NCBI GenBank assembly: GCA_002269645.1
Contig: NIVC01001332.1
Coordinates: 221,196-285,195 of the forward strand
Source of the DNA: Macrostomum lignano
Taxonomy: Eukaryota
Direction: 5' to 3'
Length of the DNA stretch: 64,000 nucleotides
The translations under genes and the position numbers were made by a program. The notes beneath the pieces are model-generated. The model was given only the letters and a program-made list of their open reading frames with translations, did no database searches and was not told the DNA's origin. Positions 14,813-45,521 of this stretch are shown here, in pieces (within the stretch, counting starts at the first letter, position 1; each line of letters opens with the position of its first letter).

Positions 14813-17800
14813 TTATTTTGCTTTCTTCTTGGTAGCGACATCTTCTTCTAGGAGAGTTCTCAGATCGGCCAGAGCCTTCACGATGGTTCCGCCGAAACGC
14901 TTTGAGTCCTGCGAGATAGATTAGCAATCCATTTTATTCTAACTCAACTATATATGATTGGCTAGATTAGCAATCCATTCTATTCCAATTCAACTATATA
15001 TGATTGGCTAGATTAGCAATCCATTTATTCCAATTCAACTATATATGATTGGCTAGATTAGCAATCCATTCTATTCCAATTCAACTATATATGATTGGCT
15101 AGATTAGCAATCCATTCTATTCCAATTCATCTATATATGATTGGCTAGATTAGCAATCCATTCTATTCCAATTCAACTATATATGATTGGCTAGATTAGC
15201 AATCCATTCTATTCCAATTCATGTATATATGATTGGCTAGATTAGCAATCCATTCTATTCCAATTCAACTATATATGATTGGCTAGATTAGCAATCCATT
15301 CTATTCCAATTCAACTATATATGATTGGCTAGATTAGCAATCCATTCTATTCCAAGTTATCTATATATTACAGGCTAGATTAGCAATCCATTTATTCCAA
15401 TTTATCTATATATGATTGGCTAGACTAGCAATCCATTCCATTCGATATTTAAGCAGCAAAAGCTACACGAACCGTCTTGTCGCAGCTGACGCGACTGCTG
15501 ACGTGAAAGAAGACGGTGTTCTCCCCAGCAATGATGTAGGACACACCATAGCCGTCCTGAGACACGGGCCCGAAGCCGCCGCCAGCGCTCAAAAAGTCGG
15601 GATGCTTCTCCAAGTCCAGCACGTTAGTCTGTCCGTGCGGAGTCTGCGAGGTGGACAGCTTCCACTGGCAGTGCAGCGCCTTCTCCAGGAAAGGCGACTG
15701 GATCTTGCAGTACTTGGACACCACGTACAGGGTAAACAGGTGCCGGTCCACGCCTTTGCCAGTCATGGCGTCCCGGTACATTGTCTGGTGCTTCTCCGAG
15801 GCTTGCCGGAGCAGGCGGACAACTTCCTCATTCTGGAAAAAAACAGCGATTGGGTTAGGCGGGGTCACGTGACCTCTGCTGGGCCGGATTGGTTGAACGA
15901 TACGAACCCCTATTGGATAAATAAGACGCGGTCACGTGACCTCTGCTGGGCCGGACTGTTATGGCCCACCCTATCAATTCATTTATAAATTTTAGGGGGA
16001 GCTCTATTAAGCTTGCACGATCAAAAGTACCTTGTCTTGATCGAGGAGAAAAAATGCACACTTTTTATATTGCTGCCTTTTTATTCGATACCCCTTTTCG
16101 TATTTCAGAGCCAGTGAATAATGTGTCAGTAGTGTAATTAGATTTTTGCACTAATTAAATTTAGAAAACATTTTCCTTTACTTACTTCTGTAAGTAGTGT
16201 AATTAGATTGTCTCCCTAATTAAATTTAGACAACATTTTGCTTTACTTTCTTCTGTAAGTAGTGTAATTCGTTTTTTCTCACTAATTTAAATAATTTGAA
16301 TTCAAGGTTACATTTTACTTTACTTTTTACTGTCAGTAATGTAATTCGATTACTAACTAATTAAGTTTAGGCTACATTTTACTTTACTTTCTTCTGTCAG
16401 CAGTGTAATTAGATATTCTTACTAATTGACTTTAGGCTGCATTTTAATTCCCTCTCTACAGTCAGTAGTGTAATTAGATTCACACTAATTAAGTTTAGGC
16501 TACATTTTACTGTACTTTCTACTGTCAGTAGCCTATCGAGAACCAGTTGCACAGCGCCGCAGGTGAAACTCACGCTAGCGCCGCTTTCCATAGCGCGAAC
16601 AAACGCGCACGACTCGTTGGTGCAGGACCGGACGGTCTCCGTGCGGCCCTCCTTGAACAGCCGGGTCATGGAGGCCTCGTAGGTCAGGCAGAACTCGCCG
16701 CCGCTGTCCCTGAAGTACGCCAGCTGCAGGGCCAGCTGGATGAACGCGTCGGGGCTCATCGAGCAGCGCTTCATGGCGCCTTTGCCGAACTGCCGGTGGA
16801 CGACCAGGTGAAGGTCGACGTCGTTCAGCAGGTCGGTGGCAACCCGAAGCTGGCTGGCAATGACGGAGCGACAGGCGTCGTTGAGGTCCCACTGCAGGCG
16901 GATGGGGTTGGGCACGTTGTTGCGCGTCTGACCGCGGCAGTGACCGTTGGACCGGTAGCTGTGGGAGCGCAGCAATTCAATGATGATGCTGATTGATAAG
17001 ATTCAAAGTACGAGGGCTACTTTTAGATAAGTTTCGAATGTTGAAAAAGTTTTGCAAATCATTTTCGGTAAGCTGACAAAATATCGAGCTTGTGAAAGCG
17101 ACCGCAGTTCAATGGTTATTCATAGGATTTTTATGTGGGGGGACAAAGCCAAGAACTCAGCATATACTCGTACATGTACATGACTAAACTCCTACATGTC
17201 TAGTATTTTAAGAATCGGTGTTGTCAGCGCTCATTTTGGCGCCGCAGGCACTCATTTTGGCGCCTCAGGGATTCCTTTTGGCGCCGCAGGCACTCATTTT
17301 GGCGCCTCAGGGATTCCTTTTGGCGCCGCAGGCACTCATTTTGGCGCCTCAGGGATTCCTTTTAGCACCGCAGGCACTTATTTTAGCGCCGCAGGCACTC
17401 ATTTTAGCACCGCAGGCACTCATTTTAGCACCGCAGGCACTCATTTTAGCACCACAGGCACTTATTTTAGCACCGCAGGCACTCATTTTAGCACCGCAGG
17501 CACTCATTTTAGCACCACAGGCACTTATTTTAGCACCGCAGGCACTCATTTTAGCACCGCAGGCACTCATTTTAGCACCGCAGGCACTCATTTTAGCACC
17601 ACAGGCACTTATTTTAGCACCACAGGCACTTATTTTAGCACCGCAGGCACTCATTTTAGCACCGCAGGCACTCATTTTAGCACCGCAGGCACTCATTTTA
17701 GAACCACAGGCACTCATTTTAGCACCGCAGGCACTCATTTTAGCACCGCAGGCACTCATTTTAGCACCGCAGGCACTCATTTTAGCACCGCAGGCACTCA

Positions 17801-20800
17801 TTTTAGCACCACAGGCACTTATTTTAGCACCGCAGGCACTCATTTTAGCACCGCAGGCACTCATTTTAGCACCGCAGGCACTCATTTTAGCACCACAGGC
17901 ACTTATTTTAGCACCACAGGCACTTATTTTAGCACCGCAGGCACTCATTTTAGCACCGCAGGCACTCATTTTAGCACCGCAGGCACTCATTTTAGCACCA
18001 CAGGCACTCATTTTAGCACCGCAGGCACTCATTTTAGCACCGCAGGCACTCATTTTAGCACCGCAGGCACTCATTTTAGCACCGCAGGCACTCATTTTAG
18101 CACCACAGGCACTTATTTTAGCACCGCAGGCACTCATTTTAGCACCGCAGGCACTCATTTTAGCACCGCAGGCACTCATTTTAGCACCACAGGCACTTAT
18201 TTTAGCACCGCAGGCACTCATTTTAGCACCGCAGGCACTCATTTTAGCACCGCAGGCACTCATTTTAGCACCACAGGCACTCATTTTAGCACCGCAGGCA
18301 CTCATTTTAGCACCGCAGGCACTCATTTTAGCACCGCAGGCACTCATTTTAGCGCCGCAGGCACTCATTTTAGCACCACAGGCACTTATTTTAGCACCGC
18401 AGGCACTCATTTTAGCACCGCAGGCACTCATTTTAGCACCGCAGGCACTCATTTTAGCACCGCAGGCACTCATTTTAGCACCACAGGCACTTATTTTAGC
18501 ACCGCAGGCACTCATTTTAGCACCGCAGGCACTCATTTTAGCACCGCAGGCACTCATTTTAGCACCACAGGCACTTATTTTAGCACCGCAGGCACTCATT
18601 TTAGCACCGCAGGCACTCATTTTAGCACCGCAGGCACTCATTTTAGCACCGCAGGCACTTATTTTAGCACCGCAGGCACTCATTTTAGCACCGCAGGCAC
18701 TCATTTTAGCACCGCAGGCACTCATTTTAGCACCGCAGGCACTCATTTTAGCACCACAGGCACTTATTTTAGCACCGCAGGCACTCATTTTAGCACCGCA
18801 GGCACTCATTTTGGCGCTCTGAAGAAAAATTATTGATTACCACCACAACGGGTCACAAGGTGGGGGGGAAACACTGGTATGTACCCCATATCATGTCCTC
18901 CGTAGCCTGATTCATATAATTAGCTAGATTAGCAATCTATTCAATTCCATCCATATGATTGGCTTTTATATTTATTAGAGTCAGGAGTCTGTGTGCACCC
19001 TGGCGCACTTTAAGCGACACTGTCACACAACCGGCGAGAGGCATTACTGCCCATTCCGCCGACTCCCCTGAGCAGGTACACAAGCGCGCGGATACGTGCG
19101 CAGTCAGACGCACAGGCACACACTCACACAGGAGTGTACAGCGGCCCTGACTTTATTTATCGTTAGGCATGTACACTTCACTGTGCCTTGGGGCTTGGCC
19201 CTCAAGACTGTTAATGCACGATCAGAGCCAAGCCTCAAATTAATGTGACTGCACTTGGAATCGAGCCTGGGCCGCTGGCACATCAGAGCGCCGCGCCAGA
19301 CCACCATCGACAATCTTGGCTGCCTTGAAACGCAGACTGCTCGCTGAGAATGTCTATGGCCAAGAGACCATTGATACTGCAATCGCGGCCATAGACAACA
19401 AAGTCAAATCTGTCACTTGTGATTTGTCAAATTGTCAGCTAATAAAAAAACAGAACTCCGGAAAAAAATTAAAAAATCCTTACCAATCTTCGACAATATC
19501 GTAGTTGAACACAACGGCTTCCCACATCTGCGACATCACGGGAGCGTCGGCCCTGAACAGTGAAGGGTAAACCACGTGACACTATACTAGTGATATAAAA
19601 TGATGAAATTAATTTAAATTATTGGACTAAATAACAGCCAACTTACCAGCTGTGCTCGCAGTTGACGCCAACCTGGAAAGATAATAAGAAAACAAATCTT
19701 TTATTTTATCAGTTTTTAATCAATTTTAAAAACACGACACTTCTAAGAAAAGCAATTATTTGAAAAGAAACAATTATAATACGAGCTCGTAGAAAATTAG
19801 GACCGCAGCGCATGCTTTGGCGATTGTCTATGGCCAAAACCGTGTATAGGGAGAGCATTGAATTTAAGACACGGCTAACCATATTCAGCGCATGCTTTGG
19901 CGATTGTCTATGGCCAAAACCGTGTATAGGGAGAGCATTGAATTTAAGACACGGCTAACCATATTCAGCGCATGCTTTGGCGATTGTCTATGGCCAAAAC
20001 CGTGTATAGGGAGAGCATTGAATTTAAGACACGGCCAACCATATTCAGCCCATGCTTTGGCGATTGTCTATGGCCAAAATCGTGTATGGGGAGAGCATTG
20101 AATTTAAGACACGGCCAACCATATTCAGCGCATGCTTTGGCGATTGTCTATGGCCAAAACCGTGTATAGGGAGAGCATTGAATTTAAGACACGGCTAACC
20201 ATATTCAGCGCATGCTTTGGCGATTGTCTATGGCCAAAACCGTGTATAGGGAGAGCATTGAATTTAAGACACGGCCAACCATATTCAGCCCATGCTTTGG
20301 CGATTGTCTATGGCCAAAACCGTGTATGGGGAGAGCATTGAATTTAAGACACGGCCAACCATATTCAGCCCATGCTTTGGCGATTGTCTATGGCCAAAAC
20401 CGTGTATGGGGAGAGCATTGAATTTAAGACACGGCCAACCATATTCAGCCCATGCTTTGGCGATTGTCTATGGCCAAAACCGTGTATGGGGAGAGCATTG
20501 AATTTAAGACACGGCCAACCATATTCAGCCCATGCTTTGGCGATTGTCTATGGCCAAAACCGTGTATGGGGAGAGCATTGAATTAGGACACGGCCAACCA
20601 TATTCAGCCCATGCTTTGGCGATTGTCTATGGCAAAAATCGTGTATGGGGAGAGCATTGAATTTAAGACACGGCCAACCATATTCAGCCCATGCTTTGGC
20701 GATTGTCTATGGCCAACACCGTGTATGGGGAGAGCATTGAATTTAGGACACGGCCAACCATATTCAGCCCATGCTTTGGCGATTGTCTATGGCCAAAACC

Positions 20801-23800
20801 GTGTATGGGGAGAGCATTGAATTAGGACACGGCCAACCATATTCAGCCCATGCTTTGGCGATTGTCTATGGCCAAAATCGTGTATGGGGAGAGCATTGAA
20901 TTAGGACACGGCCAACCATATTCAGCCCATGCTTTGGCGATTGTCTATGGCCAAAACCGTGTATGGGGAGAGCATTGAATTTAGGACACGGCCAACCATA
21001 TTCAGCCCATGCTTTGGCGATTGTCTATGGCCAAAACCGTGTATGGGGAGAGCATTGAATTAGGACACGGCCAACCATATTCAGCCCATGCTTTGGCGAT
21101 TGTCTATGGCCAAAATCGTGTATGGGGAGAGCATTGAATTTAAGACACGGCTAACCATATTCAGCCCATGCTTTGGCGATTGTCTATGGCCAACACCGTG
21201 TATGGGGAGAGCATTGAATTTAGGACACGGCCAACCATATTCAGCCCATGCTTTGGCGATTGTCTATGGCCAAAACCGTGTATGGGGAGAGCATTGAATT
21301 TAGGACACGGCCAACCATATTCAGCCCATGCTTTGGCGATTGTCTATGGCCAACACCGTGTATGGGGAGAGCATTGAATTTAGGACACGGCCAACCATAT
21401 TCAGCCCATGCTTTGGCGATTGTCTATGGCCAAAACCGTGTATGGGGAGAGCATTGAATTTAGGACACGGCCAACCATATTCAGCCCATGCTTTGGCGAT
21501 TGTCTATGGCCAAAACCGTGTATGGGGAGAGCATTGAATTTAGGACACGGCCAACCATATTCAGCCCATGCTTTGGCGATTGTCTATGGCCAAAACCGTG
21601 TATGGGGAGAGCATTGAATTTAAGACACGGCCAACCATATTCAGCCCATGCTTTGGCGATTGTCTATGGCCAAAACCGTGTATGGGGAGAGCATTGAATT
21701 TAAGACACGGCCAACCATATTCAGCCCATGCTTTGGCGATTGTCTATGGCCAAAATCGTGTATGGGGAGAGCATTGAATTTAAGACACGGCCAACCATAT
21801 TCAGCCCATGCTTTGGCGATTGTCTATGGCCAAAACCGTGTATGGGGGAGCATTGAAGCTAAGCATTGAATTTTGTCTTAGAAAGAATTTTTGAATTCCT
21901 AAATAAAAAGTGAAAAATTCTATATAAGTATATATTTCAATAATTCAATACAGATTGGGATTAATGGGTGGTTTTTGTTTTAATTCTCTTAAGGGAGAAG
22001 TTTTTTATTTTATTCATTTATTTAGCTTGAGCAGTATATATTGTATCAAAGCTTTGTTAGTTTATTACTGCAAATTCTCCATAGCACTAGCTAGATGGCT
22101 TACATTTTTAATGCAAGAGAAGACAATAACAGGTTGGATGTTTGGCAAGGATAGGTAAGAGACATGTCATTTGTGGGTCAAGGATAGGTCATTAACAGCT
22201 GGTCAGATGTGGGTCAAGGATAGGTCAGTTAAAGCTGGTCAGATGTGGGTCAAGAATAGGTCAGTAAAAGCTGGTCAGATGTGGGTCAAGGATAGGTCAG
22301 TAACAGGTCAGATGTGGGTCAAGGATAGGTCAGTAACAGCTGGTCATTTGTGGGTCAAGGATAGGTCATTAACAGCTGGTCAGATGTGGGTCAAGGATAG
22401 GTCAGTTAAAGCTGGTCAGATGTGGGTCAAGAATAGGTCAGTAAAAGCTGGTCAGATGTGGGTCAAGGATAGGTCAGTAACAGGTCAGATGTGGGTCAAG
22501 GATAGGTCAGTAACAGCTGGTCAGATGTGGGTCAAGGATAGGTCAGTAACAGCTGGTCAGATGTGGGTCAAGGATAGGTCAGTAAAAGCTGGTCAGATGT
22601 GGGTCAAGGATAGGTCAGTAAAAGCTGGTCAGATGTGGGTCAAGGATAGGTCAGTAACAGGTCAGATGTGGGTCAAGGATAGGTCAGTAACAGCTGGTCA
22701 GATGTGGGTCAAGGATAGGTCAGTAACAGGTCAGATGTGGGTCAAGGATAGGTCAGTAACAGCTGGTCAGATGTGGGTCAAGGATAGGTCAGTAACAGGT
22801 CAGATGTGGGTCAAGGATAGGTCAGTAACAGCTGGTCAGATGTGGGTCAAGGATAGGTCAGTAACAGCTGGTCAGATGTGGGTCAAAGATAGGTCAGTAA
22901 TGAACCCAACTTGGTAACTAAGCGCTTACCCGTCCATTGGCGAACACGATCAACGAGAAGGACTTGTCGAACCAGCGGTTCCGCCCGTTGCCATGCAGCA
23001 AGCTCTTGGCGAAGTGGTCCAGCTTCGAGTCGTCCTTGGGATCGTAGTCGGCTTCTTCATCGTCCAGCACAAGGACGAACGCCGCCCGCTCCACAGCGTC
23101 CAGACTGGTCTTGTTGACGCCTCGCCTAAAGAAGTCTTTGCGGGCTCGAGCCCAGACCTTCCGCTCGCCTGCCGTCAGGGCCGCCAGCTCCGCCTCGCCT
23201 GGCGCAGGCGGCGACTTGTCGTCAACGATGCGCTGGAACTGCGCCTCCAGCTCGCACGGCTCCAGCCAGCGGTTGCCGTAGTGGAAGTACACCTTGTAGA
23301 ATCGGCCAGAGTGGAACACGGCAATGTGCCGCGTGTCGTTCAGGTGCATCAGGTAGTCGCGCTCCTCGCCTTTGGGTCGGTGAGAAATTAGCGTGGGTTA
23401 GTGGAGGGTTACTGGCGACAAGATCAAAGAGCCGGTAAGTTCAAATTAAGCGGTAAGATCAAATGAGGCCGCATGATCAAAGGAGGCGGTAAGATAAAAG
23501 AGAACGGTAATAAGGAGGTGGTAAGATCAAAGACGGCGGTAAGATAAAATGAAGCAGCATCTGTCACGCCATTGCTGTTGCTTACCCACCAACCCCCTTT
23601 CGAGAGGCTGTATATACTATCTTAAATCTGCTTAATAAATTTTATTAATTCGGGCAGAGGCTATGAAATTCTTCTCCAAACTTGTCCGTGATTAAAACGA
23701 AAAATAATACACCCTCTGGCTTTATGCTGAAGAAAACTTTAATCCTGCATACGGATTTCGTCCATAGCGACCTTTTTAACGTTCACATCAGCCCGGGCGT

Positions 23801-26400
23801 CTCTCTCAGTCCTTAACAGGATTAGAATTACCTGGACAATCGGTCACAGCAATATCCTGGGCAATGAGCTCGCAAATTCTCTCGCCAAGCTGACAGCAGC
23901 AACCCATACGGCAACTACCGTCTGATGAGGCTACCCATTCCTAGGTCCCAAGTCACCCGCCAAAGAAACAAGTGGCTTCGGTAAGATTAAAGGAGGCGGT
24001 AAGATCAAAGGAGGCGGTAAGAGCAATGGAAGCGGTAAGATCAAAGGAGGCGGTAATATTAAAGGAGGCGGTAATATCAAAGGAGGCGGTGAAGATCAAA
24101 GGAGGCGGTGAAGATCAAAGGAAGCGGTAAGATCAAAGGAGGCGGTGAAGATCAAAGGAAGCGGTAAAATTAAAGGAAGCGGTGAAGATCAAAGGAAGCG
24201 GTAAGATCAAAGGAAGCGGAAAGATCAAAGGAGGCGGTAAGATTAAATGAAGCGGCAAGATTAGAAGAGGCAACTCAAAGCAAAATAACTCACCAGGAAT
24301 CCTAGTGGTGGCGAACTGTCTCTCGTACTGCCAGCTGCACAGAGGCACGAGGTTCTGCACCATGAGTGGCTGCATTGTCTGCCTGCTGATGTTGCGCCAG
24401 TAGCGCAAGAAGCCCCAGGCCATGTTTGCCGCGCGGGCCACCTGCGTTGGAGGGGGAACTAGTTAACCTGCTCAACTGGGAATTCGCTAACCTACTCAAC
24501 TGGGAATTCGCTAACCTGTTCAACTGGGAATTCGCTAATCTACTCAAAACTGGGAATTCGCTAACCTGTTCAACTGGGAATTCGCTAATCTACTCAAAAC
24601 TGGGAATTCGCTAACCTGTTCAACTGGGAATTCGCTAATCTACTCAAAACTGGGAATTCGCTAACCTGTTCAACTGGGAATTCGCTAATCTACTCAAAAC
24701 TGGGAATTCGCTAACCTACTCAACTGGGAATTCGCTAACCTGCTCAACTTGGAATTCCCTTAACTACTCAATGAGCAATTTTTACTAAAAATCATCAACA
24801 ATTACAAACAACCTTGGCTCACCTGAACATTAGACGGGTTAAGGAGCACGGCATCAACCCCATAGTAGTTGGAGTTCACCATGATGGGGTCGCGACTGTA
24901 CAGGTAGACGAACTCCTCCCACCAGTCGCTAACGTAGTTATTAGTCCAGTAGTACTTCAGTTTCAAATAGAATTGCAATTTCCAAGACTCTTTGGCTAAG
25001 AAATCTCGGGCCAGAGCTCGAGTCTCGGCCATCTCAGATTCGCTAAGCAGCGGCTCCATGCTAAGCAGGTAGCGATCCACCGTCTTCTTCACTGGCGGAA
25101 CTGGCAGCGTTGGTAGGCAGCCCTGGCAATAAAGTAAAGTAAAATGATAATTTCCATACATATCGGCTGAGCAAATGTACAAGCCTACTGTAAAATCTTT
25201 GATCTAAAAAACCAATATTTCGATACATATCGGCAATTTTCATACCTTTAAAGAAGACAAAATAGAAACAATTATTTCAATACTTATCGACTATTTTATT
25301 CATACTTTTAGGACGAGAAAATATAAATAAATACACTTCCGATACATATAGACTATTTTTCATATATATTAGGGCAACAAATTCTCAAATAATATACCTA
25401 TTAGGACGACAAAATCTAAAGAACTATTTCAATACAGATCGGCACCAACCAGGAAGACAAAATGAAAAAATTATTTCGATATATATCGGCTATTTTCATA
25501 TAAATTAGATGAAGATATTTATTAGACAAACTATTGCATAAACAATTATTTCGATACATATAGGCTATTTTCAAATAAATTAGATAGATATTTATTAGGA
25601 GACAAACTATTGCATAAACAATTATTTCGATACATATCGGCTATTTTCATATAAATTAGATGAAGATATTTATTAGCAGACAAACTATTGCATAAACAGT
25701 TATTTCGATACATATCAGCTATTTTCATATAAATTAGATGAAGATATTTATTAGCAGACAAACTATTGCATAAACAGTTATTTCGATACATATCAGCTAT
25801 TTTCATATAAATTAGATAAAGATATTTATTAGGAGACAAACCATTGCATAAACAATTATTTCGATACATATCGGCACCAACCAAACAACTCACCTGGAAG
25901 CTAAACAAACTAGCCCCAGACGACCAGAGCAAGACGCGGCAGGCGCCGAACCACAGCTTGGTCCGCCAGGAGGTCGGGCCGCGCACCTCGTACATCCAGC
26001 CGTGATAGGCCAGCAGCTGACTCTGCACAGACTTGTACACTCTGGCAACGGCTAGCCAGGAAAAGCCGGAGAAGATCGACACGGCCAGGTAGCGATTATA
26101 CGGAGCCGGCACGGTGACAAATCGACTAATTAGGCTTTCAATTTTTGCTCCGCAGCCAAAAGTTGGATCCCGGCCGAGCAGTGCTGCGCTGGTGCCGCCA
26201 AACAGGGCCAGACAGAAACTCTTGGGCCCCATCGGGTAGGTGCTGTTCCATACCCGGTTCTTCAGCCTGCCGATGCCTTTCTTGTAGCTGCGCACTATTG
26301 AAGCGAACACTTCGCGTAGCACCGTGTGATCAAAGTCCAGCTGGATGCCTTCGTCCGTGATGTTGAAAGCAAACACCACCGCTTGATGAGCTTCGGCCAT
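14813..26400 (-). CDS. CPT1: Carnitine O-palmitoyltransferase 1 paralogue A, 9 exons, ~776 aa
   Basis: Exons 26400-25894, 25122-24823, 24441-24294, 23369-22930, 19672-19647, 19552-19484, 16958-16574, 15832-15473, 14908-14813, all GT-AG and in frame. MAEAHQAV N-terminus, [21 protein letters not shown] (catalytic His), [26 protein letters not shown]. Confidence 0.93.
14918..15445. repeat. ~46-bp minisatellite in CPT1-A intron 8; opposite-strand relative of the 42-bp array at 28500-32570
   Basis: Unit TAGATTAGCAATCCATTCTATTCCAATTCAACTATATATGATTGGC; its reverse complement contains GGAATAGAATGGATTGCTAATCTA. Confidence 0.9.
17230..18815. repeat. 21-bp minisatellite (CATTTTAGCACCGCAGGCACT), ~75 units, CPT1-A intron 6
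   Basis: Direct tandem units; source of the 486-546 aa repeat ORFs. Confidence 0.97.
18973..19268 (-). repeat. Dispersed ~300-bp repeat, copy 2 (inverted relative to 779-1082)
   Basis: Reverse-complement alignment by eye; lies in CPT1-A intron 6. Confidence 0.8.
19807..21855. repeat. 80-bp (some 79-bp) satellite, ~26 units, CPT1-A intron 4
   Basis: Unit CATGCTTTGGCGATTGTCTATGGCCAAAACCGTGTATGGGGAGAGCATTGAATTTAAGACACGGCCAACCATATTCAGCC; no unique spacers. Confidence 0.97.
22130..22900. repeat. 36/33-bp minisatellite, CPT1-A intron 4
   Basis: Unit AGATGTGGGTCAAGGATAGGTCAGTAACAGCTGGTC. Confidence 0.95.
23420..24270. repeat. GGCGGTAAGATCAAAGGA-type repeats in two blocks (23420-23550, 23980-24270), CPT1-A intron 3
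   Basis: Visible units flanking a unique ~430-bp insert. Confidence 0.85.
24460..24760. repeat. 23-26-bp minisatellite (CAACTGGGAATTCGCTAACCT), CPT1-A intron 2
   Basis: Visible units. Confidence 0.9.
25140..25880. repeat. ~78-bp degenerate tandem repeat, CPT1-A intron 1
   Basis: ATTATTTCGATACATATCGGCTATTTTCATA-type units. Confidence 0.85.
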
Positions 26401-26414
26401 GATTCGTCATTAAA

Positions 26415-27780: not shown

Positions 27781-28499
27781 AATTACTGATTACAAACTCA
27801 CAAACACAATCAATACACTCATTATAAGTCGATAAGCACAACCGATAAACTATAAATTAATTGTGATAAACACAACTGATAAACACAACCAATAAACACA
27901 ATTGATACTCTTATTTAGGTCACAAACACAAATCTACTTATTGGGTCATAAGCAGATACAGTCATAAAATACATTCCTTATGCTTAATACACTAATACAC
28001 CTAATTTTAATCAGACTTTAAAATAAAATAATGAAATCAATTAGCATTATTTATGTACAACAGAATTGTCTCCGCAAAAAAGCAAAACATGTATGAATCG
28101 TGTTCATTCTTAATCTAAGAATCAAAATGCTACAACTGTACAACAGAACCCTATAAAAAGAGCCAATGCAGAAGACAACGGCAAAAACAGGATAAATTGA
28201 ATATTAATTAAAAATCAAAGGGTTTGCCAATAATTATTGTAGATCGCTTATAAAAACAAGTAGTTCGCAATAAAACGCCAATAAAATAAAAAACACAAGA
28301 TAGAAAAAATTATATATAATGCGGTAATTTAGGCAATTTTAGTCATTAGAATTATAATGTTTTAGGCCCTTAAATGCAACTAGCTCGTAAAACCGGCGTC
28401 AATTAAGACAATAAAACGCTATATCTCACAATTTCAATAAAAGATAAAAATATGGACTGGAGTGTATTTACTAATGCCCAGCTATTGCACAGAAACTAA

Positions 28500-31400: not shown

Positions 31401-32570
31401 ATGAAACAGAATGGATTGCTAATCTAGGCAATCATATGAATAATGAATTAGAATGGATTGCTAATCTAGCCAATCATATAAATGATGGAATAGAATGGAT
31501 TGCTAATCTAACCAACCATATAAATGATGGAATAGAATGGACTGCTAATCTAACCAATCATATAAATGATGGAATAGAATGGACTGCTAGTCTAACCTAC
31601 CATATAAATGATGGAATAGAATGGATTGCTAATCTTACTAACCATTTGAATGATGAAATAGAATGGACTGCTAATCTAACCAATCATATAAATGATGGAA
31701 TAGAATGGATTGCTAATCTAGCCAACCATATAAACGATGGAACAGAATGGATTGCTAATCTAGCCAATCATATGAATAATGAATTAGAATGGATTGCTAA
31801 TCTAGCCAATCATATAAATGATGGAATAGAATGGATTGCTAATCTAACCAACCATATGAATGATGGAATAGAATGGATTGCTAATCTAACCAACCATATG
31901 AATGATGGAATAGAATGGATTGCTAATCTAACCAACCATAGGAATGATGGAATAGAATGGATTGCTAATCTAACCAACCATATGAATGATGGAATAGAAT
32001 GGATTGCTAATCTAACCAACCATATGAATGATGGAATAGAATGGATTGCTAATCTTACTAACCATTTGAATGATGAAATAGAATGGACTGCTAATCTAAC
32101 CAACCATATAAATGATGGAATAGAATGGATTGCTAATCTAGCCAACCATATAAACGATGGAACAGAATGGATTGCTAATCTAGCCAATCATATGAATAAT
32201 GAATTAGAATGGATTGCTAATCTAGCCAATCATATAAATGATGGAATAGAATGGATTGCTAATCTAACCAACCATATGAATGATGGAATAGAATGGATTG
32301 CTAATCTAACCAACCATATGAATGATGGAATAGAATGGATTGCTAATCTAACCAACCATAGGAATGATGGAATAGAATGGATTGCTAATCTAACCAACCA
32401 TATGAATGATGGAATAGAATGGATTGCTAATCTAACCAACCATATGAATGATGGAATAGAATGGATTGCTAATCTAACCAACCATATGAATGATGGAATA
32501 GAATGGATTGCTAATCTAACCAACCATATGAATGATGGAATAGAATGGATTGCTAATCTAGCCAACCATA
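28500..32570. repeat. 4-kb array of 42-bp units with higher-order blocks, between the CPT1 paralogues
   Basis: Unit AACCATATGAATGATGGAATAGAATGGATTGCTAATCTAACC; near-identical blocks start at 29130, 30074 and 30890. Confidence 0.97.
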
Positions 32571-32905
32571 TGGATTTTCATTCATGTTATGCATTGAAAA
32601 ATCAGTACATGCTCAAACGGAATAGCAAAGCAAGGTACTGGAAACGCAAGTCTGAACAGCAGGTCATAAAATATTAGTAGACTATCTGCATGGATATAAT
32701 TGTGTTATATTTCTCGAATTCAGCTTCCAGTTTAAGTACAAACTTAACGGGATAATGTTACAGTATAACGTAGCAATAAATTAAAAAATATATTGCACAG
32801 ATATTGACCGAATATTGCACCAATGTAATAAACTAGTCATATAATTAGTTATATTCAACTCATAATAGGCAGGGTTCGCAAAGCAAAATCGACCTCAGAC
32901 AGCAG

Positions 32906-35900: not shown

Positions 35901-38900
35901 TCACTTAATGCAAATTCGCTCGATTTCTGAATAGCCTACTCTCTTCTGGGCATATGAACGCGCAAGACTATCGATTTTTGTTCTCCCACGTCAGTGCTAT
36001 GGTTTAAGCCATAGACAAAAGTTTCAAGCATCGAAATCAAGCTTACTAGTAGGGATTCAGCATGGCTTTCCTATTAGATATCAGAGCGAAAGCAAGGAGT
36101 ATATATATTTTGACTTTTCTCCTTTGCTAGAGCACAAATTCTTTTTCATTTAAGCAAGTAAAAACAATTGTCTAAATGGCTGCCGGAGGAAGAACCCATG
36201 AAGACCGAGTGCTGGCAAATATCGAAGAGTTGAAATACACAAGCGAAGATTGCTGTGCGGCGACTTGTACCAGCACTAGTACCTCTGTAAACGAAGATGG
36301 CATCCCGATTCGCATGCACCAGTTTCCGAAGAATCAGTCCATAGCATTGAAGTGGCAATCAATGCTGGAGTTACGACCATTTCACTCGAGAAGCTGTGGA
36401 AAATGAAGTGGAAGGTATGCAGCTTGCATTTTACAGACGAGGCATACAATTGCCCAAGACTACGCCATGACCGAAGTACAAGGCTACGGTAGGATGCTGT
36501 TCCTGACAGAGAGCTGGTGTTGCCACGACTAATCAGGGAGAAGCCACTAGAAATAATTCGGAGTGACGATGCGGCTGATAATACGTACCCACCTGTTCTG
36601 TCGCGCTTTGACGTGGAAGACGCAGTTCCAGAAGCAGATCAGATTCCTTCAATAGCAGTTGATTTAGCTAGCGCTGCTCCACGAGAACCAACTGCGTCTT
36701 GCTCTGCATCATTTCTACGACTGCATGCATCGTCCAGCAAAGTAGCTGGAAACCTACGACGAAAGCTGTGTCGGCAGGAGAAGACGATCGATAAGCTGCG
36801 GCGCAAAATCGAAGACTCGCAGGTTGGAAAGTTCAGCAGCAGCAGCAGCAGCGCCCTTCACCGTCTAGTGCAGAGCTCTATGAAGCAAACAAAGTCTCGC
36901 CACCGTGGCATGCGTTGGGCTGTCGAAGACATCTGCTCTGCTATTCAAGTGCATCACAAAAGTCCTGCCGCGTACCGACTTCTGCGAGATCAGTGGAAGA
37001 TGCCATTTCCATCAGAGACGTCAATTAAACGGCGCATCAGATTGTTTTTTCAGGAAGAAGGCGTTTGTGAAGTTACCATGAAGCTGATGAGAAAAAAGTT
37101 GCAAGACTGCACAGAGAAAGAGCGAGTGGCCACTCTTTGCTTTGATGGAATGAGCTTGTCAGGATGTGTGCGTTACAGCCAGTACAAGGACAAGATAATT
37201 GGCTTTGAGACTAATCCTGCTCAAGCGGATGCACCAAAAGTTGTAGACGAAGCGGTAGTAGGCGTAGTCGCGGTATTTTGCACAACTGGAAGCAGTCGAT
37301 TGCATATTACCCTGTGCATCGGAGTCTCGGACAGGAAGGTTTTCGTAACGCGATTGAAAGTTGTCTGACGGCGTGTCATAATGCAGGAATTATTGTTGTA
37401 GCTTTGGTTGCAGACCAAGAGACAAGCCAGTGGAGCTACTTATCTAAGTTGGTCAGCTCTTCCAAGCCGTTTCTGCACCACCCAGTGACAAACGAGCCTG
37501 TTTTTGTCATCATTGATATCCCTCACTGCCTGAAAAATGCGCGAAATGCTTTGTTCAAGAACGAAATTGTGTTCGACGATTGCAAAACAGCAAAATGGAA
37601 GCATGTTACGGACTTCTATCAGGCCGATAGTCGCAACAAGCTTAAATTGGCACCAAGGTTAAGCGACAGTCACTTCAACCTACAGGTTGGAAACAAAATG
37701 AAAGTATCTCTCGCGGCGCAGATTTTCAGCCATTCAGTCGCCAGTGGAATCCGAACTTCGGTGTATCACAAAATAATAGAATCCGATGGAGAGCAAACAG
37801 CAGAGTTTTTAGATAGAATTAATGGCATATTTGACATTCTTAACTCAGCTCACTTATTCGATAAGGGTCTTAAAGCGCCCCCTTTCTCGAGATATTCTTG
37901 AAGAGCAGATCACAGAACTGGAGGCAGCTGAAAGCTTCTTACACAGTTGGAAATTTAGACCTCACAGCGGAAGGAAGCAAAAGACTACAATGAAGTTCAA
38001 GGAAGCGTGGCTGCTGTCTATCTCATCGATCAAAAGTCTGGCCAGATCGCTGCTGCAAAACGGCGATTTTCAATACATCTGCACTAGGAGGCTAACACAG
38101 GATCACGTTGAGGTGCGTTAAACAGCCTTTTACCACTAGGCATGTTAATTATTGTAGCTTAGAGATGATTAAATAACAACTTTTTAAAAAATTAAATTTT
38201 CAATTGTAGATCTATTTAGCGTCATCAGAGGCCGCAATGGGTTCAATGAAAAGCCAGAGCTTCCTGCCTTTATTGGTGCCCTACGATCGATTTCTGCGAG
38301 TGGCATAATGAAAGCCGAGTCAAAAACCGGAAATTGCTCCAGCGACCAGTGCTCTGCTGGCGTCACAGCAGCATGCATTACTCAACCGCTAAATTTACCA
38401 GCCGGATCAAGCGCATCTTTTGCCGAAATCGTGCCGACGACACGCACAGATGAGGGGCTCCAGTGCAGTTTGCAGCCGCTTGCTTCTCCTGACACATCAA
38501 TCGAAGCCATGGAATATGTTGCTGGCTACGTGTTAGCAAAAAGTGGTGTACTGGATTGCCTGGATTGCAAGGAAACTCTGACCGCTCAAATCCCATCTGG
38601 AGTTCACTTGCCCAACAAGCAGTACAGTGCCGTTCACACTGGATTGACAGAACCATCGGAAGCAGTTCTGGAAAGTTTTATGCTGTTGGAATCTTTATTT
38701 GGCTCATTATCAAAGACTACATTGCTGCAGAATCACGTGAGCCATTCAGTTTTGAGATGCTTCCGACACGCAAATGTGACCTTCCCCTCGTGCTCCGTGC
38801 ACACGGAGATCGTCTGGCAGCAACTGTGCGTCAAGTTCGCTCGTCTCAGACTGCATCACTGGTGCCGCTGTGAGGCCAAGCCGCTGAAGGATAGGACAGC

Positions 38901-41900
38901 GCGATGCTCAGCAAGCAGAAAGATGAGTAAACATAATTAACCTTCGTGTTTGTATTAAACATTTAATTGTATTTCGTTCTTTGTCACATTCGTGAACTTC
39001 AATTTGTTCATGAACATTTGCTTTAACTACCGGGTAAGTAGCTAGCTTAAACTATAAAGTAAAATTTTGTTTTCATAATGCTTTTGTCTTGCCCAAATGC
39101 TTTATATGTACGAGTATAATATTTACTTTTGTGAAATCTTCTTTCAATCTGTGTATACATGATAAGTTGATACGACCCTGTGCATCAAAATATATATACA
39201 TATACTCGTAAGTGCAATGCGCATGCCTCTATTATGACAAGTTTAAACCAAGCCCACATTTTTGTTAATTTTTTTTCATTTTCCGTCGGTGTAAATAAAC
39301 TTCAATGATTGAAAAATGAGGGTCTGAAATGTCAAAACTTTTTTGTCTACATCATAATCTAAATATAATATTAAAATTTTACTTGGTGCACAAATATATC
39401 CAAAAAACTCTATACAGACGCCCAATTGAAAGTAGCTTATTCATGAAATAGGCGAGTGACCCATCTAGTGTTTTTATTATCTATGGTGTTCTACTTGACT
39501 AATAAAGTACACATTTAAATTGTAATACTTTCAAATACTTAACTACTATTCATATAAGTTTAATCACTATTTGTTTCAATTGAATCTAGTGTCTACTGGG
39601 ATGTCAAATTTCTTGCTAATCAAAATAAAACTACATTTTGACTGTACTTTTTTCTGTTAGTAGTGTAATTGTAGTTAGATTTTATTAATAATTAAATTTG
39701 AACTTAACTTTCTACTGTCAGTAGTGTAATTAGTTTTTTCTCACTAATTGAAATAATTTAAATTCAAGGCTACATTTTACTTTACTTTCTACTGTCAGTA
39801 GTGTAATTAGTTTTTTCTCACTAAATTAAATAATTTAAATTAAGACTACATTTTACTTTACTTATTACAGTCAGTAATGTAATTCGATTACTAACTAATT
39901 AAGTCTAGGCTACATTTTACTGTACTTTCTACTGTCAGTAGCCTATCGAGAACCAGTTGCACAGCGCCGCAGGTGAAACTCACGTTAGCGCCGCTTTCCA
40001 TAGCGCGAACAAACGCGCACGACTCGTTGGTGCAGGACCGGACGGTCTCCGTGCGGCCCTCCTTGAACAGCCGGGTCATGGAGGCCTCGTAGGTCAGGCA
40101 GAACTCGCCGCCGCTGTCCCTGAAGTACGCCAGCTGCAGGGCCAGCTGGATGAACGCGTCGGGGCTCATCGAGCAGCGCTTCATGGCGCCTTTGCCGAAC
40201 TGCCGGTGGACGACCAGGTGAAGGTCGACGTCGTTCAGCAGGTCGGTGGCAACGCGAAGCTGGCTGGCGATGACGGAGCGACAGGCGTCGTTGAGGTCCC
40301 ACTGGAGGCGGATGGGGTTGGGCACGGGGCCTTTCGGTGTGCCCTTGCAATGACCCGTCGCAGTGTATCTAAAAGCATAAAAATATTCAAGTAGACATGT
40401 CAACTAAAATATTTGCTGAAAAATTAACGAGCTACTTTAAGTACAAATGTGAGGATTTTTGTAGAAATTTAGTCCTAAGCGGGTAAATGAAATTATGGAA
40501 TTACCCAGTGTCTGGCACAATGTCATAGGTGATGACAGCCTCTTCCCACAATTGCGACATTACTGGAGCATCGGCCCTAAAGTAGTAAGGTAAGCTTTTT
40601 TATTATCACTAAAATTTCCGTAAAATAAATAGCAATAAAATACAACTTTTATATAAAACTTACCAACTGTGTTCTGCGTTGACGCCAATCTGTAACCAGT
40701 TAGATAGATGACAGTGAGATTGACTTGAGATTATAAATAAAAATTAAAAAAAATTATAAATAGACATTTTCACAATACTGTCAATTGTGTCTTGTCAAAC
40801 CAGTTACAGCACGAACTACAATATAATCCATAGTAGCTAGCTAGCATAGGCCACTTCCGGTCAGAACTACTATTCGTAAGTATCATCAGGAGCCACTTCC
40901 AGTCTGAACTGTCATCCAAATAGATTATCAGGGGCCACTTCCGGTCTGACTGTCATCCAAATAGATTATCAGGGGCCACTTCCGGTCTTAACTGTTATCC
41001 ATAGTGATTATCAGGAGCCACTTCCGGTCTGAACTGTTATCCAAATAGATTATCAGGAGCCACTTCCAGTCTGAACTGTCATCCAAATAGATTATCAGGG
41101 GCCACTTCCGGTCTAAACTGTTATCCATAGGGATTATCATGAGCCACTTCCGGTCTGAATTGTTATCCAAATAGATTATCAGGGGCCACTTCCAGTCTTA
41201 ACTGTCATCCAAATAGATTATCAGGGGCCACTTCCAGTCTTAACTGTCATCCAAATAGATTATCAGGGGCCACTTCCAGTCTAAACTGTTATCGATAGGG
41301 ATTATCATAAGCCACCTACAGTCTGAACTGCTATTTCCTACGAAATCATTTCCGGTCAGGAGAATAATAACTAATGACACTCAAAATACGCATAATTTCA
41401 GCTTAGCTCACCCGTCCATTGGCGAACACGATCAGCGAGAAGGACTTGTCGAACCAGCGGTTCCGCCCGTTGCCATGCAACAGGCTCTTAGCGAAGTGGT
41501 CCAGCTTCGAGTCATCCTTGGGATCGTAGTCGGCCTCTTCATCGTCCAGCACAAGGACGAACGCCGCCCGCTCCACAGCGTCCAGACTGGTCTTGTTGAC
41601 GCCTCGCCTAAAGAAGTCTTTGCGGGCTCGAGCCCAGACCTTCCGCTCGCCTGCCGTCAGGGCCGCCAGCTCCGCCTCGCCTGGCGCAGGCGGCGACTTG
41701 TCGTCAACGATGCGCTGGAACTGCGCCTCCAGCTCGCACGGCTCCAGCCAGCGGTTGCCGTAGTGGAAGTACACCTTGTAGAATCGGCCAGAGTGGAACA
41801 CGGCAATGTGCCGCGTGTCGTTCAGGTGCATCAGGTAGTCGCGCTCCTCGCCTGTTCAATTCATAGACGGGTTTATTTTTCAAATTGACTGGCACTTTAA

Positions 41901-44900
41901 ATCCAGATAATGAAACTTATCAAAACCAAACTTTTTTTAAAAAGCGCCACTTCTAATCCTGAAGAATGACACTTTCAATTTTTATTGAAAAATGGCACTT
42001 TTAATCTTGAAAAATGGCACTTTCAATCTTTATTTAAAAATGGCACTTTTAATCTTGAAAAATGGCACTTTTAATTTTGAAAAATGGCACTTTTAATCTT
42101 GAAAAAGGGTACTTTCAACCTTTATTTAAAAATGGCACTTTTAATCTTGAAAAATGGCATTTTAAATCTTAAAAAATGGCACTTTGAATCTTGAAAAATG
42201 GCACTTTTAACCTTGAAAAAATGGCACTTTTAATCTTGAAAAATGGCACTTTTAACCTTGAAAATGGCACTTTCAATCTTGAAAAAATGGCACTTTTAAT
42301 CTTGAAAAATGGCACTTTTAATCTTGAAAAATGGCACTTTTAATTTTGAAAAATGGCACTTTTAATCTTGAAAAAGGGTACTTTCAACCTTTATTTAAAA
42401 ATGGCACTTTTAATCTTGAAAAATGGCATTTTAAATCTTAAAAAATGGCACTTTGAATCTTGAAAAATGGCACTTTTAACCTTGAAAAAATGGCACTTTT
42501 AATCTTGAAAAATGGCACTTTTAACCTTGAAAATGGCACTTTCAATCTTGAAAAAATGGTGCTTTTAATCTTGAAAAATGGCACTTTTAATCTTGAAAAA
42601 TGGCACTTTCAATCTTGAAAAATGGCACTTTTAATCTTGAAAAATGGCATTTTTAATTTTGAAAAATGGCACTTAATCTTGAAAAAGGGCACTTTCAATC
42701 TTTATTTAAAAATGGCACTTTTAATCTTGAAAAAATGGCATTTTAAATCTTAAAAAATGGCACTTTGAATCTTGAAAAATGGCACTTTTAACCCTGAAAA
42801 TGGTGCTTTTAATCTTGAAAAATGGCACTTTTAACCTTGAAAATGGCACTGTCAATCTTGAAAAAATGGCCCTTTTAACCTTGAAAATGGTGCTTTTAAT
42901 CTTGAAAAATGGCACTTTTAATCTTGAAAAATGGCACTTTCAATCTTGAAAAAGAACTGGCTCACCTGGTATCCTAGTAGTGGCAAACTGTCTCTCATAC
43001 TGCCAGCTACACAGCGGCACAGTGTCATTCAGTAGAATCGGCGGCATCTCCTCCCGGCAGATGCGGCGCCAGAACTGCAGCATCGCCCAGGACACGTTTG
43101 CCGCCCTGGCCGCTTGAACCCGGGTTGGCCTGACGAATATCGCGTCCACTGCGTAATAGTTGGAGTTCACCATTATTGGGTCGCGGCTGTACAAGTAGAC
43201 AAATTCTTCCCACCAATCGCTGACGTAGTTCGGAGCCCACCAGGATTTCAGGCGCAAATAGAATTGCAACTTCCTGGCAATGCCCGTGCTCTGCGGGTGT
43301 TGGTATAAACACCTATATCTATCTACTTCTGTAGCTACCTCTAGCTACCTGTGTAGCTACCTCTATCTACCTGTGTAGCTACCTCTTATCTACCTGTGTA
43401 GCTACTGGTACCTCTATCTACCTGTGTAGCTACTGGTACCTCTTATCTACCTGTGTAGCTAATTCTATCTACCTGTGTAGCTACCTCTTATCTACCTGTG
43501 TAGCTACCTCTTATCTACCTGTGTGGCTAATTCTATCTACCTGTGTAGCTACCTCTTATCTACATGTGTAGCTACCTCTTATCTACCTGTGTAGCTAATT
43601 CTATCTACCTGTGTAGCTACCTCTATCTACCTGTGTAGCTACCTCTATCTACCTGTGTAGCTACCTCTTATCTACCTGTGTAGCTAATTCTATCTACCTG
43701 TGTAGCTACCTCTTATCTACCTGTGTAGCTACCTCTTATCTACCTGTGTGGCTAATTCTATCTACCTGTGTAGCTACCTCTTATCTACCTGTGTAGCTAC
43801 CTCTATCTACCTGTGTAGCTACCTCTAGCTACCTGTGTAGCTACCTCTATCTACCTGTGTAGCTACCTCTTATCTACCTGTGTAGCTACCTCTTATCTAC
43901 CTGTGTAGCTACCTCTTATCTACCTGTGTAGCTAATTCTATCTACCTGTGTAGCTAATTCTATCTACCTGTGTAGCTACCTCTATCTACCTGTGTAGCTA
44001 CCTCTAGCTACCTGTGTAGCTACCTCTATCTACCTGTGTAGCTACCTCTTATCTACCTGTGTAGCTACCTCTTATCTACCTGTGTAGCTACCTCTATCTA
44101 CCTGTGTAGCTACCTCTATCTACCTATGTAGCTACCTCTTATCTACCTGTGTAGCTACCTCTATCTACCTATGTAGCTACCTCTTATCTACCTGTGTAGC
44201 TACCTCTTATCTACCTGTGTAGCTACCTCTATCTACCTGTGCAGCTACCTCTATCTACCTGTGTAGCTACCTCTATCTACCTGTGTAGCTACCTCTATCT
44301 ACTGGAGTAGCCAAACTCGTGTACCCTCGTAGTAGCTACCTATACTCTACCTACTTTTGAAGCTAACTCAGCCTATTTTGTCTCACCTCATTTTACCTTT
44401 GTCTACCTCACTGACTATTTTTGTCTACCTACCTCACCGCACTATCCGCTATTGTAGCCTGACTCACTCGGCCAAGATTAAGAAAACCCACCTGAAATTC
44501 GGCAGCCAACCGTCGCATTTCAAGCATTTCCTCGTCGCCAAGCAGCGGCTCCATGGAGACCAGATACCGGCGCACCGTGTCGCCAACGGACGGCAGCGGC
44601 AGACGGGGCAGCGAGTTTTGAAACGAAAACAAACCCGGCCGACGATTTCTTAACAGAGTTTTGGCCAGAACCGCCCACACTTTGGTCGGTCGCGACACCC
44701 GACCTCGGGCTTCGTACATCCAACCGTGATAGGCTAGCATCTGGCCAATCAGCAGCTTATAGATCAGCACTACTAGTAGCCACAGTATGCAGGCTATGAG
44801 TGCGCAGGAGGCGTACGTGTCGTGAGGCGGCACCACGCCTAAGTAGCTGCATAGGGGTATCAAAAGGATTAAATACAAAACTATGAATAGGATTAGTGAT

Positions 44901-45521
44901 GAAAGGTGCATGGAGTGCCAAGGTGGGAGACAGAGAAGTAGGCTTGAGAAGGGCTGAGAGATGGAGGTAAGAGTAGTGTGGGAGGAGACAGAGAAGTAGG
45001 GTTGGGAAAGGCTAGGAGAGGGAGAGAGAGTAGAGTGGAAGGGGGAGGCAGAGTAGGGTGAGAAAGTCTGACAGAGGGAGGTAGAAGTGGAGTGGGGGAG
45101 GGAAACAGAGAAGTAGGGTTGGAGAGGCAGGGAAAAGACGTTACACCGAGACTACAAAGAGGCTTCATGATAGGCTCAGAGCATCCGCAGTAGAGAACTC
45201 TTAGTACAGAGAGTAAATAATGTGTCAACTCTTTGCCACTCACCGCACAAGCAACGGGTTGAGCTGTTTCACATAGCCAAATGATAAATCGTTGCCAAAC
45301 ATAGTGGCAAAGATCATCACTAACATCATTGTTAGCAGGCTGCTCGGCTTAGCAGGATAAATCCCATTGCGCAGTCGGTTTTTAAACCTGGCGTACCACT
45401 TTTTATAGGCTCGAACTCCGGACGCCCAGACGCGTAGCAGGGCGTCGTGATCGAATTCAAATTCGACGCCCTGGTCGGTGATATTAAATGCGAACACTAC
45501 AGCTTGATGGGCCTCGGCCAT
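32906..45521 (-). CDS. CPT1: Carnitine O-palmitoyltransferase 1 paralogue B, 9 exons, ~767 aa
   Basis: Exons 45521-45244, 44846-44492, 43290-42966, 41851-41412, 40689-40664, 40576-40505, 40368-39984, 34318-33959, 32968-32906, all GT-AG and in frame. Same CPT1 motifs including NAEHSWAD; ends [20 protein letters not shown]. Confidence 0.93.
33130..33935. repeat. 15-bp minisatellite (GAGGATCTGGGATCT / GAGGATCTGACATCT), CPT1-B intron 8
   Basis: Two sub-arrays with variant units. Confidence 0.95.
34755..35440. repeat. 25-bp minisatellite (AATCTTACAGATTCACCAATTCATC), CPT1-B intron 7
   Basis: Visible units. Confidence 0.95.
35876..39485 (+). mobile_element. P-element superfamily (THAP/THAP9-like) DNA transposon, full length but decayed
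   Basis: ~30-bp imperfect TIRs CACAGATACTAAAACACTAGATGGGTCAC and CATAGATAATAAAAACACTAGATGGGTCAC; 8-bp TSD GTGTTCTA (35868-35875, 39486-39493). Confidence 0.92.
36176..38940 (+). pseudogene. THAP + P-element transposase pseudogene
   Basis: THAP motifs CCAATC...HQFPK...W...KVCSLHF...DAVP; catalytic region [27 protein letters not shown]. Frameshifts at ~36375, ~37270, ~37870 and at the ~38113-38209 intron junction; in-frame TAG at 36490. Confidence 0.88.
40850..41330. repeat. ~42-bp minisatellite (GCCACTTCCRGTCTGAACTGT...), CPT1-B intron 4
   Basis: Visible units. Confidence 0.9.
41960..42950. repeat. ~22-bp minisatellite (AATCTTGAAAAATGGCACTTTT), CPT1-B intron 3
   Basis: Visible units. Confidence 0.95.
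43320..44340. repeat. 22-23-bp minisatellite (TATCTACCTGTGTAGCTACCTCT), CPT1-B intron 2
   Basis: Visible units. Confidence 0.95.

Follow-up and report, generated by a model that had tools for sequence, protein, structure and literature searches.

Segmental interlocus gene conversion as the probable source of a mosaic pair of tandem CPT1 genes in the flatworm Macrostomum lignano

Exon-restricted homogenisation between adjacent paralogues is known from RHD/RHCE and from the gamma-globin genes HBG1/HBG2. It has also been described for the primate L/M opsin array (OPN1LW/OPN1MW; PMC4919619), and mosaic interlocus conversion in tandem paralogues has been reported for the three HMA4 copies of Arabidopsis halleri (bioRxiv 10.1101/2025.10.29.685298) and, in Caenorhabditis, for col-12/col-13, hsp70 and fog-2/ftr-1 (PMC3966223). 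The locus described here lies at the end of contig NIVC01001332.1 in the Mlig_3_7 assembly (GCA_002269645.1) of Macrostomum lignano, in the final 64 kb, referred to below as the window. It consists of two complete tandem CPT1 (carnitine O-palmitoyltransferase 1) genes in which near-identical segments alternate with segments saturated at silent sites. Positions 55521-29985 of the window are matched at 100% by locus L004 of the same contig. This mosaic is very probably explained by segmental interlocus (non-allelic) gene conversion between old paralogues, making the pair a new and unusually clean member of the well-known class of mosaic conversion in tandem genes; a literature search found no account of CPT1 or of gene conversion in Macrostomum. 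In vertebrates the isoforms CPT1A, CPT1B and CPT1C differ mainly in the N-terminal regulatory/membrane region that sets malonyl-CoA sensitivity, with a conserved catalytic core, and their genes are unlinked, derive from genome duplications and evolve independently.

The two genes, termed A and B, lie in the same orientation on the minus strand with B upstream of A; the spacer between them is 6.5 kb and homologous exons are 18-23 kb apart (Table 1). Gene models were obtained by scoring GT/AG junctions against a guide protein, with blastn and tblastn used for repeat and homology mapping. The predicted A protein is 100% identical over its full length to M. lignano PAA83980.1, a homeologous copy, and the B protein matches the ML2-derived UniProt models P0002 and P0127. 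Both match nearly the whole Pfam profile Carn_acyltransf (PF00755, the choline/carnitine O-acyltransferase catalytic domain; A, E=7.4e-183, residues 175-754; B, E=2.2e-179, residues 175-757) and, at residues 1-47, the full profile of the CPT1-specific N-terminal regulatory domain CPT_N (PF16484; A, E=3e-19; B, E=9e-17). The motifs EHSWADAP, TET, STSQ and GGGFGP are found at equivalent positions in A and B (471/472, 603/605, 685/687 and 709/711, respectively); EHSWADAP contains the catalytic histidine of the CPT1 family, in which TET, STS and GGGFGP also have functional roles. Kyte-Doolittle 19-residue maxima, a crude measure, were 1.54 and 2.79 for the presumed two transmembrane segments of B, which would separate the N-terminal and catalytic domains, a clearly membrane-like appearance, and 1.14 and 1.31 for those of A (exon 1, 26400-25894; residues 50-125), the lowest of eight CPT1s on this same crude scale, the others giving 1.4-2.8. 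Membrane anchoring or regulation of A may therefore differ from that of B. An initial annotation of the sequence had assigned nine exons to each gene and this numbering stands; its treatment of exons 1-3 as counterparts does not, since introns 1 and 2 are at different positions in A and B and these exons are consequently not exon-for-exon equivalents.

Divergence between A and B was calculated for each exon by the Nei-Gojobori method. The proportion of synonymous sites that differ (pS) was 0.63-0.88 in exons 1-3, 5 and 6 and 0.48 in exon 9, with whole-exon values of 0.058, 0.105 and 0.25 in exons 4, 7 and 8, respectively. Finer division gave pS of 0.02-0.06 in the recent tracts described below versus about 0.7 elsewhere (0.73 in the diverged exons), silent sites being saturated in exons 1-3, 5 and 6 and in nt 1-42 of exon 7. 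Synonymous divergence (dS) is thus far from uniform along the alignment, silent sites being either near zero or saturated with sharp edges between the two states, and a whole-gene A/B dS (0.6) is meaningless. These values bear out the initial annotation, which had described exons 1-3, 5-6 and 9 as strongly diverged and exon 4 as carrying about six differences with an identical protein: the exon 4 copies differ at 6 of 440 nt, all synonymous, with a nonsynonymous divergence (dN) of 0. It had also pointed to a peptide that is identical in the two proteins in spite of many synonymous differences, and the 26 residues NYVSDWWEE...NSNYY are indeed the same in A and B, with 11 of the 78 nt differing. 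Differences were found at 129 of 549 conserved degenerate codons, leaving unchanged silent-codon runs of 102 (exon 4), 89 (exon 7 into exon 8) and 34 (exon 8). When the differences were shuffled, a run of 102 was reached in 0 of 100,000 shuffles by the GENECONV criterion, and the longest shuffled run was 54.

Two further B-A tandem copies are present in the same assembly, on NIVC01000392.1 (loci L001 and L003) and on NIVC01000890.1 (L005). The latter holds B plus only exons 1-3 of A (A3), ending about 26 nt into A3 exon 4, and a homology search for A3 with the A-specific N-terminus returned no M. lignano protein. Compared with the window, the exons of these copies differ by about 1% and their alignable introns by 3-8%. 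M. lignano is a neopolyploid in which the subgenomes S, L1 and L2 differ by 1.4-2.4% in single-nucleotide polymorphisms (SNPs; PMC10733133), and judged by sequence divergence the three tandem copies match these three subgenomes. Exon structure and tract edges are alike in all three locus copies, each of which also has private singletons. Differences fixed between A and B were counted across five copies (A1, A2, B1, B2 and B3).

Three converted tracts were delimited. The identity of exon 4 (tract 1) begins and ends exactly at the splice sites, the flanking A/B introns being unalignable, and no A/B difference is fixed among the five copies; between homeologues these flanks are 96% conserved. A variant is shared as A1=B3 versus A2=B1=B2 at exon 4 sites 369, 372 and 417, and these three SNPs suggest that some further A/B exchange took place after the loci had separated. 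Tract 2 has one edge inside exon 7, coinciding with a loop, coded by nt 1-42, whose sequence differs across the whole set of CPT1s compared. In these 42 nt, 24 sites show fixed A/B differences, followed by three more (nt 64, 100 and 115) and none thereafter, so that the sub-tract from nt 116 (16843) onward is without fixed differences. Between the window copies there are 4 differences from VPNPIRL (16915 / 40325) to the end of exon 7, and the identity then continues for the first 78 nt of intron 7, after which there is 1 mismatch and then decay. The near-identity of this part of exon 7, its continuation into the intron and the abruptness of the edges, including the one within exon 7, had all been noted in the initial annotation. 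Similarity in intron 7 declines across a 65-nt minisatellite, ending at about 16130 / 39600, and apart from this start of intron 7 all A/B introns are unalignable. The minisatellite was found only in A and B and not in intron 7 of two further paralogues, C and D. By blastn it is 76-83% identical between A and B1, B2 and B3, with indels of units, versus 99.6% between A1 and A2, which indicates that this portion of the tract is older than the adjoining exon.

Tract 3 includes nt 1-208 of exon 8, where 5 differences separate A1 from B1 and 1 A/B difference is fixed, in line with the near-identity previously seen at the 5' end of this exon. About 25 fixed differences follow in nt 209-360, and A/B identity from nt 209 to the end of the exon plus 19 nt of intron 8 is about 83%. 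For nt 209-360, A-B pS is 0.54 and dN 0.106, with a dN to C of 0.18; A and B are mutually closest, and the tree of this segment, built on 50 columns, supports an AB clade at 69% bootstrap. Input from a third paralogue into B1 exon 8 was considered and rejected, as the private variants of B1 match neither C nor D. A candidate older tract immediately upstream of intron 3, where the last 18 codons of exon 3 have 7 silent A/B differences versus about 11 between B and C, was likewise set aside as having too few sites.

For paralogues C (P0003, L002) and D (P0131, L006), exact spliced alignments to the respective loci were obtained. As silent sites are saturated among all four paralogues, the branching order was taken from amino-acid data, using neighbour-joining protein trees with seven outgroups and 300 bootstraps. 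The 379 unconverted columns gave (A,(D,(B,C))), with bootstrap values of 100 for BC, 100 for BCD and 0 for AB, and the 328 converted columns gave (((A,B),C),D), with 100 for AB, 100 for ABC and 0 for BC. In exons 1-3, dN is 0.15 between B and C, 0.26-0.27 for B-D and C-D and 0.40-0.43 between A and the others, the highest of the four paralogues; in exon 4, dN is 0.16 between AB and C, 0.20 between AB and D and 0.28 between C and D. The tree conflict taken together with this dN pattern indicates that the converted sequence is B-type and was copied from B into A after the B/C split, and the same sequence comparisons point clearly to B into A as the direction of the founding conversion. Similarity to outgroup CPT1s is 43-46% for A and 46-47% for D, and A appears to retain ancestral residues rather than to be a decayed B.

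Interlocus conversion is the only reading that fits the abrupt silent-site states, the identity within intron 7, the tree conflict and the replicated edges together. The repeated conversion across the catalytic domain that the initial annotation proposed agrees with the mosaic, the conflicting trees, the intron 7 transfer and the strata of different age seen here. The sequence of events would be as follows. A would have branched off before the duplications yielding D and C, and after the B/C split B-type DNA would repeatedly have been copied into A by homology-dependent break repair using the neighbouring copy as template, each event spreading only as far as usable homology. The outcome would be three islands of concerted evolution in exons 4 (440 nt), 7 (385 nt) and 8 (360 nt), which are long and conserved, with edges at presumed homology cliffs formed by unrelated satellite-filled introns at the splice sites and by the hypervariable loop in exon 7 nt 1-42. 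Exons 5, 6 and 9 (26-96 nt) and the diverged exons 1-3 would offer no usable homology and would keep diverging, and the converted exons are the only three of at least 360 nt with retained homology. Published conversion tracts lie between 50 and several hundred bp, with about 200 bp as the minimal processing segment (PMC3924818), and introns impede conversion, diverged introns acting as a barrier (PMC3966223). In the light of these reports, tracts of 220-440 nt alongside unconverted exons of 26-96 nt fit a homology-limited process.

A homogenised island would ease further conversion and so generate nested strata, and at least three age strata are apparent in the tracts. The old stratum would comprise the 3' part of exon 8 (pS 0.5) and the intron 7 minisatellite, the intermediate stratum exon 7 nt 43-115, and the recent stratum exon 4, exon 7 from nt 116 to intron position +78 and exon 8 nt 1-208. 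The pS of the recent stratum (0.02-0.06) is of the same order as the divergence among the three subgenomes. The N-terminus, the segment close to the catalytic histidine and the C-terminus are paralogue-specific, as originally described; the selection implied in that description does not follow, as poor usable homology may suffice, and selection for paralogue-specific regions is possible and unneeded for the pattern.

Several points weigh against this account. Synonymous saturation among A-D means that the branching order was drawn from amino-acid data alone, and no CPT1 from another Macrostomum was found in protein searches, so that C and D served as the reference frame. The Pilon polishing applied to the assembly (PMC5730564) could alter single SNPs, which weakens the case for exchange after duplication made from the three shared sites. 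GC content at third codon positions (GC3) in the tracts is 0.81-0.91, a small excess over the same segments of C and D and no clear signature of biased conversion; GC-biased conversion was considered and set aside as not demonstrated, as GC3 is raised in these segments of C and D as well. Finally, the exon 4 tract is without any intron base, which is tidy for a DNA-level process and fits a spliced-RNA template too.

Under this last alternative, a spliced B transcript or its cDNA would have served as repair template for exon 4. Identity to the last base on both sides with zero intron bases, between flanks that are 96% stable between homeologues, is what such a template would give, and the wide differences in intron position among the paralogues are consistent with active intron turnover. 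However, tract 2 carries intron 7 sequence and its minisatellite, and the presence of this shared minisatellite in A and B and its absence from C and D indicate that non-coding DNA moved, which rules out an RNA template for tract 2 and shows that DNA-templated conversion operates at the locus. Edges that coincide with the exon are equally expected from a homology cliff at unrelated introns, and no A intron between converted exons has been deleted, unlike the tendency with a multi-exon cDNA template. For a single-exon tract the two kinds of template are indistinguishable, and on balance RNA-templated conversion of exon 4 is considered improbable.

Collapse or cross-correction of exons 4, 7 and 8 of one paralogue onto the other during assembly or polishing is very unlikely. 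For Mlig_3_7, PacBio reads were put together by Canu, and the result was polished by Pilon with Bowtie2-mapped Illumina reads and STAR-mapped RNA-seq (PMC5730564); polishing based on RNA-seq acts on exons only and could yield exon-exact identity such as that of exon 4, which stops precisely at its splice sites. Chimeric scaffolds are moreover reported to make up 36% of the assembly length (PMC10733133). Short reads, however, cannot cross-map at the 25-45% divergence of the neighbouring exons, so that polishing would only sharpen similarity that already exists, and an artefact of this kind accounts neither for an edge inside exon 7 nor for identity extending into intron 7 and the minisatellite. 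The window is free of N, the edges are identical in three separately assembled loci, and each of the five copies of exon 4 has singletons of its own between unique flanks, the opposite of homogenisation. Models from the independent ML2 pipeline (P0127, P0122 and P0002) show the tandem order, the mosaic at protein level and copy-specific residues. Given the Pilon polishing, single-SNP details are less certain than the overall mosaic.

It is less probable still that A and B are young duplicates in which the remaining A exons diverged fast or came from another donor. The high dN of A (0.40 in exons 1-3) and its weak hydrophobic segments can be read as acceleration, and the position of intron 3 is common to A and B alone. 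Against this, saturation (pS 0.73) is seen at the silent sites of the diverged exons, the introns are unalignable, introns 1 and 2 are placed differently in the two genes, A is nearly as similar to outgroup CPT1s as D is, a BCD clade without A has 100% bootstrap, and the protein database yielded no further donor of A type. Selection at the nucleotide level, by way of codon bias or of a regulatory or RNA element within the sequence, would agree with the high GC3 of exons 4, 7 and 8 and can be dismissed almost entirely, as pS between these segments of A and B and their counterparts in C and D is 0.46-0.67, the identity includes non-coding intron 7 sequence whose movement excludes such selection, and conservation by itself cannot produce conflicting segment trees.

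Gene conversion may also bear on intron 3, located just upstream of exon 4 (phase 1, after IPG). This position is found only in A and B, being absent from C, D and the annelid Capitella, despite C being the sister of B and A the outgroup. It is conceivable, if rather doubtful, that the founding conversion carried the intron from B into A and that the intron sequence then decayed, leaving a conversion island confined to the exon; B would have gained intron 3 after the B/C split and A would have received it with exon 4. Alternatively, an ancestral intron 3 would have been lost twice, in C and in D. If true, the transfer would be a documented case of intron spread between paralogues by gene conversion. 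A comparison of intron positions over the first 1.4 kb of coding sequence showed that all four M. lignano paralogues differ, with paralogue-specific positions at alignment columns 175 and 276 (A), 217 (B and D), 257 and 351 (C), 307 (D) and 325 (A and B). None of these occurs in Capitella (L007), which shares only five positions with the M. lignano paralogues. The comparison suggests high intron turnover, possibly including gain, in this CPT1 family.

Private tandem-repeat arrays dominate nearly every intron of A and B, each such intron having its own; their units are 15-80 nt, they reach up to 3 kb and often begin within 30-80 nt of the splice site, and it is these private arrays that make the A/B introns unalignable. 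Their abundance agrees with the share of tandem repeats reported for the genome, 15%. A 46-bp satellite in intron 8 of A (14917-15443) is related to the 42-bp array of the spacer, showing about 81% similarity to that array's homeologous copy. Intron 7 of B (34319-39983) measures 5665 nt in the window, 2667 and 2966 nt in the homeologues and 741 nt in A; the window copy thus has a large insertion specific to it, with a 25-nt satellite at 34755-35439 as one part.

In the GenBank models of the three B homeologues (P0124, P0125 and P0126) the join of exons 6 and 7 (40505-40520 / 40363-40368) is 17 nt shorter than in the model used here and has non-canonical boundaries with ACACTG microhomology on both sides. 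The resulting products of 620-629 aa contain about 130 out-of-frame residues and are without exons 8-9. An in-frame GT/AG junction between exons 6 and 7 of B exists and is used by the ML2-derived models, and the shorter join is probably an annotation error, an aberrant transcript being a further possibility. In the ML2 model P0127 a coiled-coil-like product from upstream is joined to B and B in turn to A, which reveals read-through gene models in that older annotation. Upstream of B the public annotation has a 170-aa open reading frame without a Pfam match (49827-50339) and a protein-kinase gene (Pkinase) from about 55000-55521 onward. A 44-aa protein from a Fimbriimonadaceae metagenome bin (P0121, L008) was considered as a possible independent copy and rejected, being an unrelated bacterial protein on a bacterial contig; its placement in the 90% cluster of P0001, a flatworm CPT1, is a clustering artefact.

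Table 1. Positions in the window of the CPT1 genes, the converted tracts and associated tandem repeats.
Feature	Coordinates	Strand	Details
CPT1 paralogue A	14813..26400	-	776 aa; nine exons; intact frame; stop codon at 14813
A exons 1-5	26400-25894, 25122-24823, 24441-24294, 23369-22930, 19672-19647	-	Spliced model
A exons 6-9	19552-19484, 16958-16574, 15832-15473, 14908-14813	-	Spliced model; stop included
CPT1 paralogue B	32906..45521	-	767 aa; nine exons; intact frame; start codon at 45521
B exons 1-5	45521-45244, 44846-44492, 43290-42966, 41851-41412, 40689-40664	-	Spliced model
B exons 6-9	40576-40505, 40368-39984, 34318-33959, 32968-32906	-	Spliced model; stop included
Tract 1 in A	22930..23369	-	Whole exon 4, 440 nt; 98.6% identity to B 41412-41851; dN 0
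Tract 1 in B	41412..41851	-	Exon 4; donor type, B-type by tree and dN pattern to paralogues C and D
Tract 2 in A	16496..16916	-	Exon 7 nt 43 to end plus 78 nt of intron 7
Tract 2 in B	39906..40326	-	Partner of A 16496-16916
65-nt minisatellite, intron 7 of A	16124..16531	-	Tandem Repeats Finder (TRF); homologous to B array; older part of tract 2
65-nt minisatellite, intron 7 of B	39616..39941	-	Homologous to A array
Tract 3 in A	15625..15846	-	14 nt of intron 7 acceptor region plus exon 8 nt 1-208
Tract 3 in B	34111..34332	-	Partner of A 15625..15846
Older stratum in A	15454..15624	-	Exon 8 nt 209-360 plus 19 nt of intron 8
Older stratum in B	33940..34110	-	Partner of A 15454..15624
42-bp satellite	28505..32572	.	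About 96 copies; most of B-A spacer; outside converted sequence
Intron arrays in A	14917-15443, 16124-16531, 17230-18812, 19806-21857, 22146-22900, 23979-24261, 24464-24771, 25465-25875		
Intron arrays in B	33128-33931, 34755-35439, 40849-41334, 41985-42953, 43318-44302		

If the mosaic is the product of interlocus conversion, such exchange can go on over very long periods within separate islands the size of an exon, even where the rest of the two paralogues is saturated and their intron positions have changed, the edges of the islands being set by where homology runs out. The three subgenomes provide three replicates of the locus within one animal, which could be used to time and to count conversion events. 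For work on M. lignano there is a caution that exons 4, 7 and 8 cannot tell A from B, which applies to CPT1 trees, the dating of duplications, knock-downs and the choice of guides. As judged from their sequences, the A/B pair would resemble a natural domain swap in which one catalytic core is joined to two very different N-terminal regulatory/membrane regions.

The arrangement is similar to that of the HMA4 and Caenorhabditis cases, with tandem paralogues in the same orientation, a conversion rate that varies along the gene, near-identical tracts alternating with diverged ones, introns that limit the tracts and a chromosomal closeness that favours exchange. It differs from them in that the background is saturated, intron positions differ, the islands lie within very old paralogues and three homeologous replicates of the locus are present in one genome. 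As in the opsin, RHD/RHCE and HBG1/HBG2 pairs, conversion between adjacent paralogues homogenises some exons and leaves others copy-specific. Those pairs are young and have homologous introns, whereas the flanking introns of the flatworm genes are unrelated satellite arrays, with tract edges at homology cliffs. Like vertebrate CPT1A, CPT1B and CPT1C, A and B differ mainly at the N-terminus and share a catalytic core; unlike the vertebrate isoforms, the flatworm genes form a tandem pair in which similarity of the core would be kept by sequence exchange and not by purifying selection alone.

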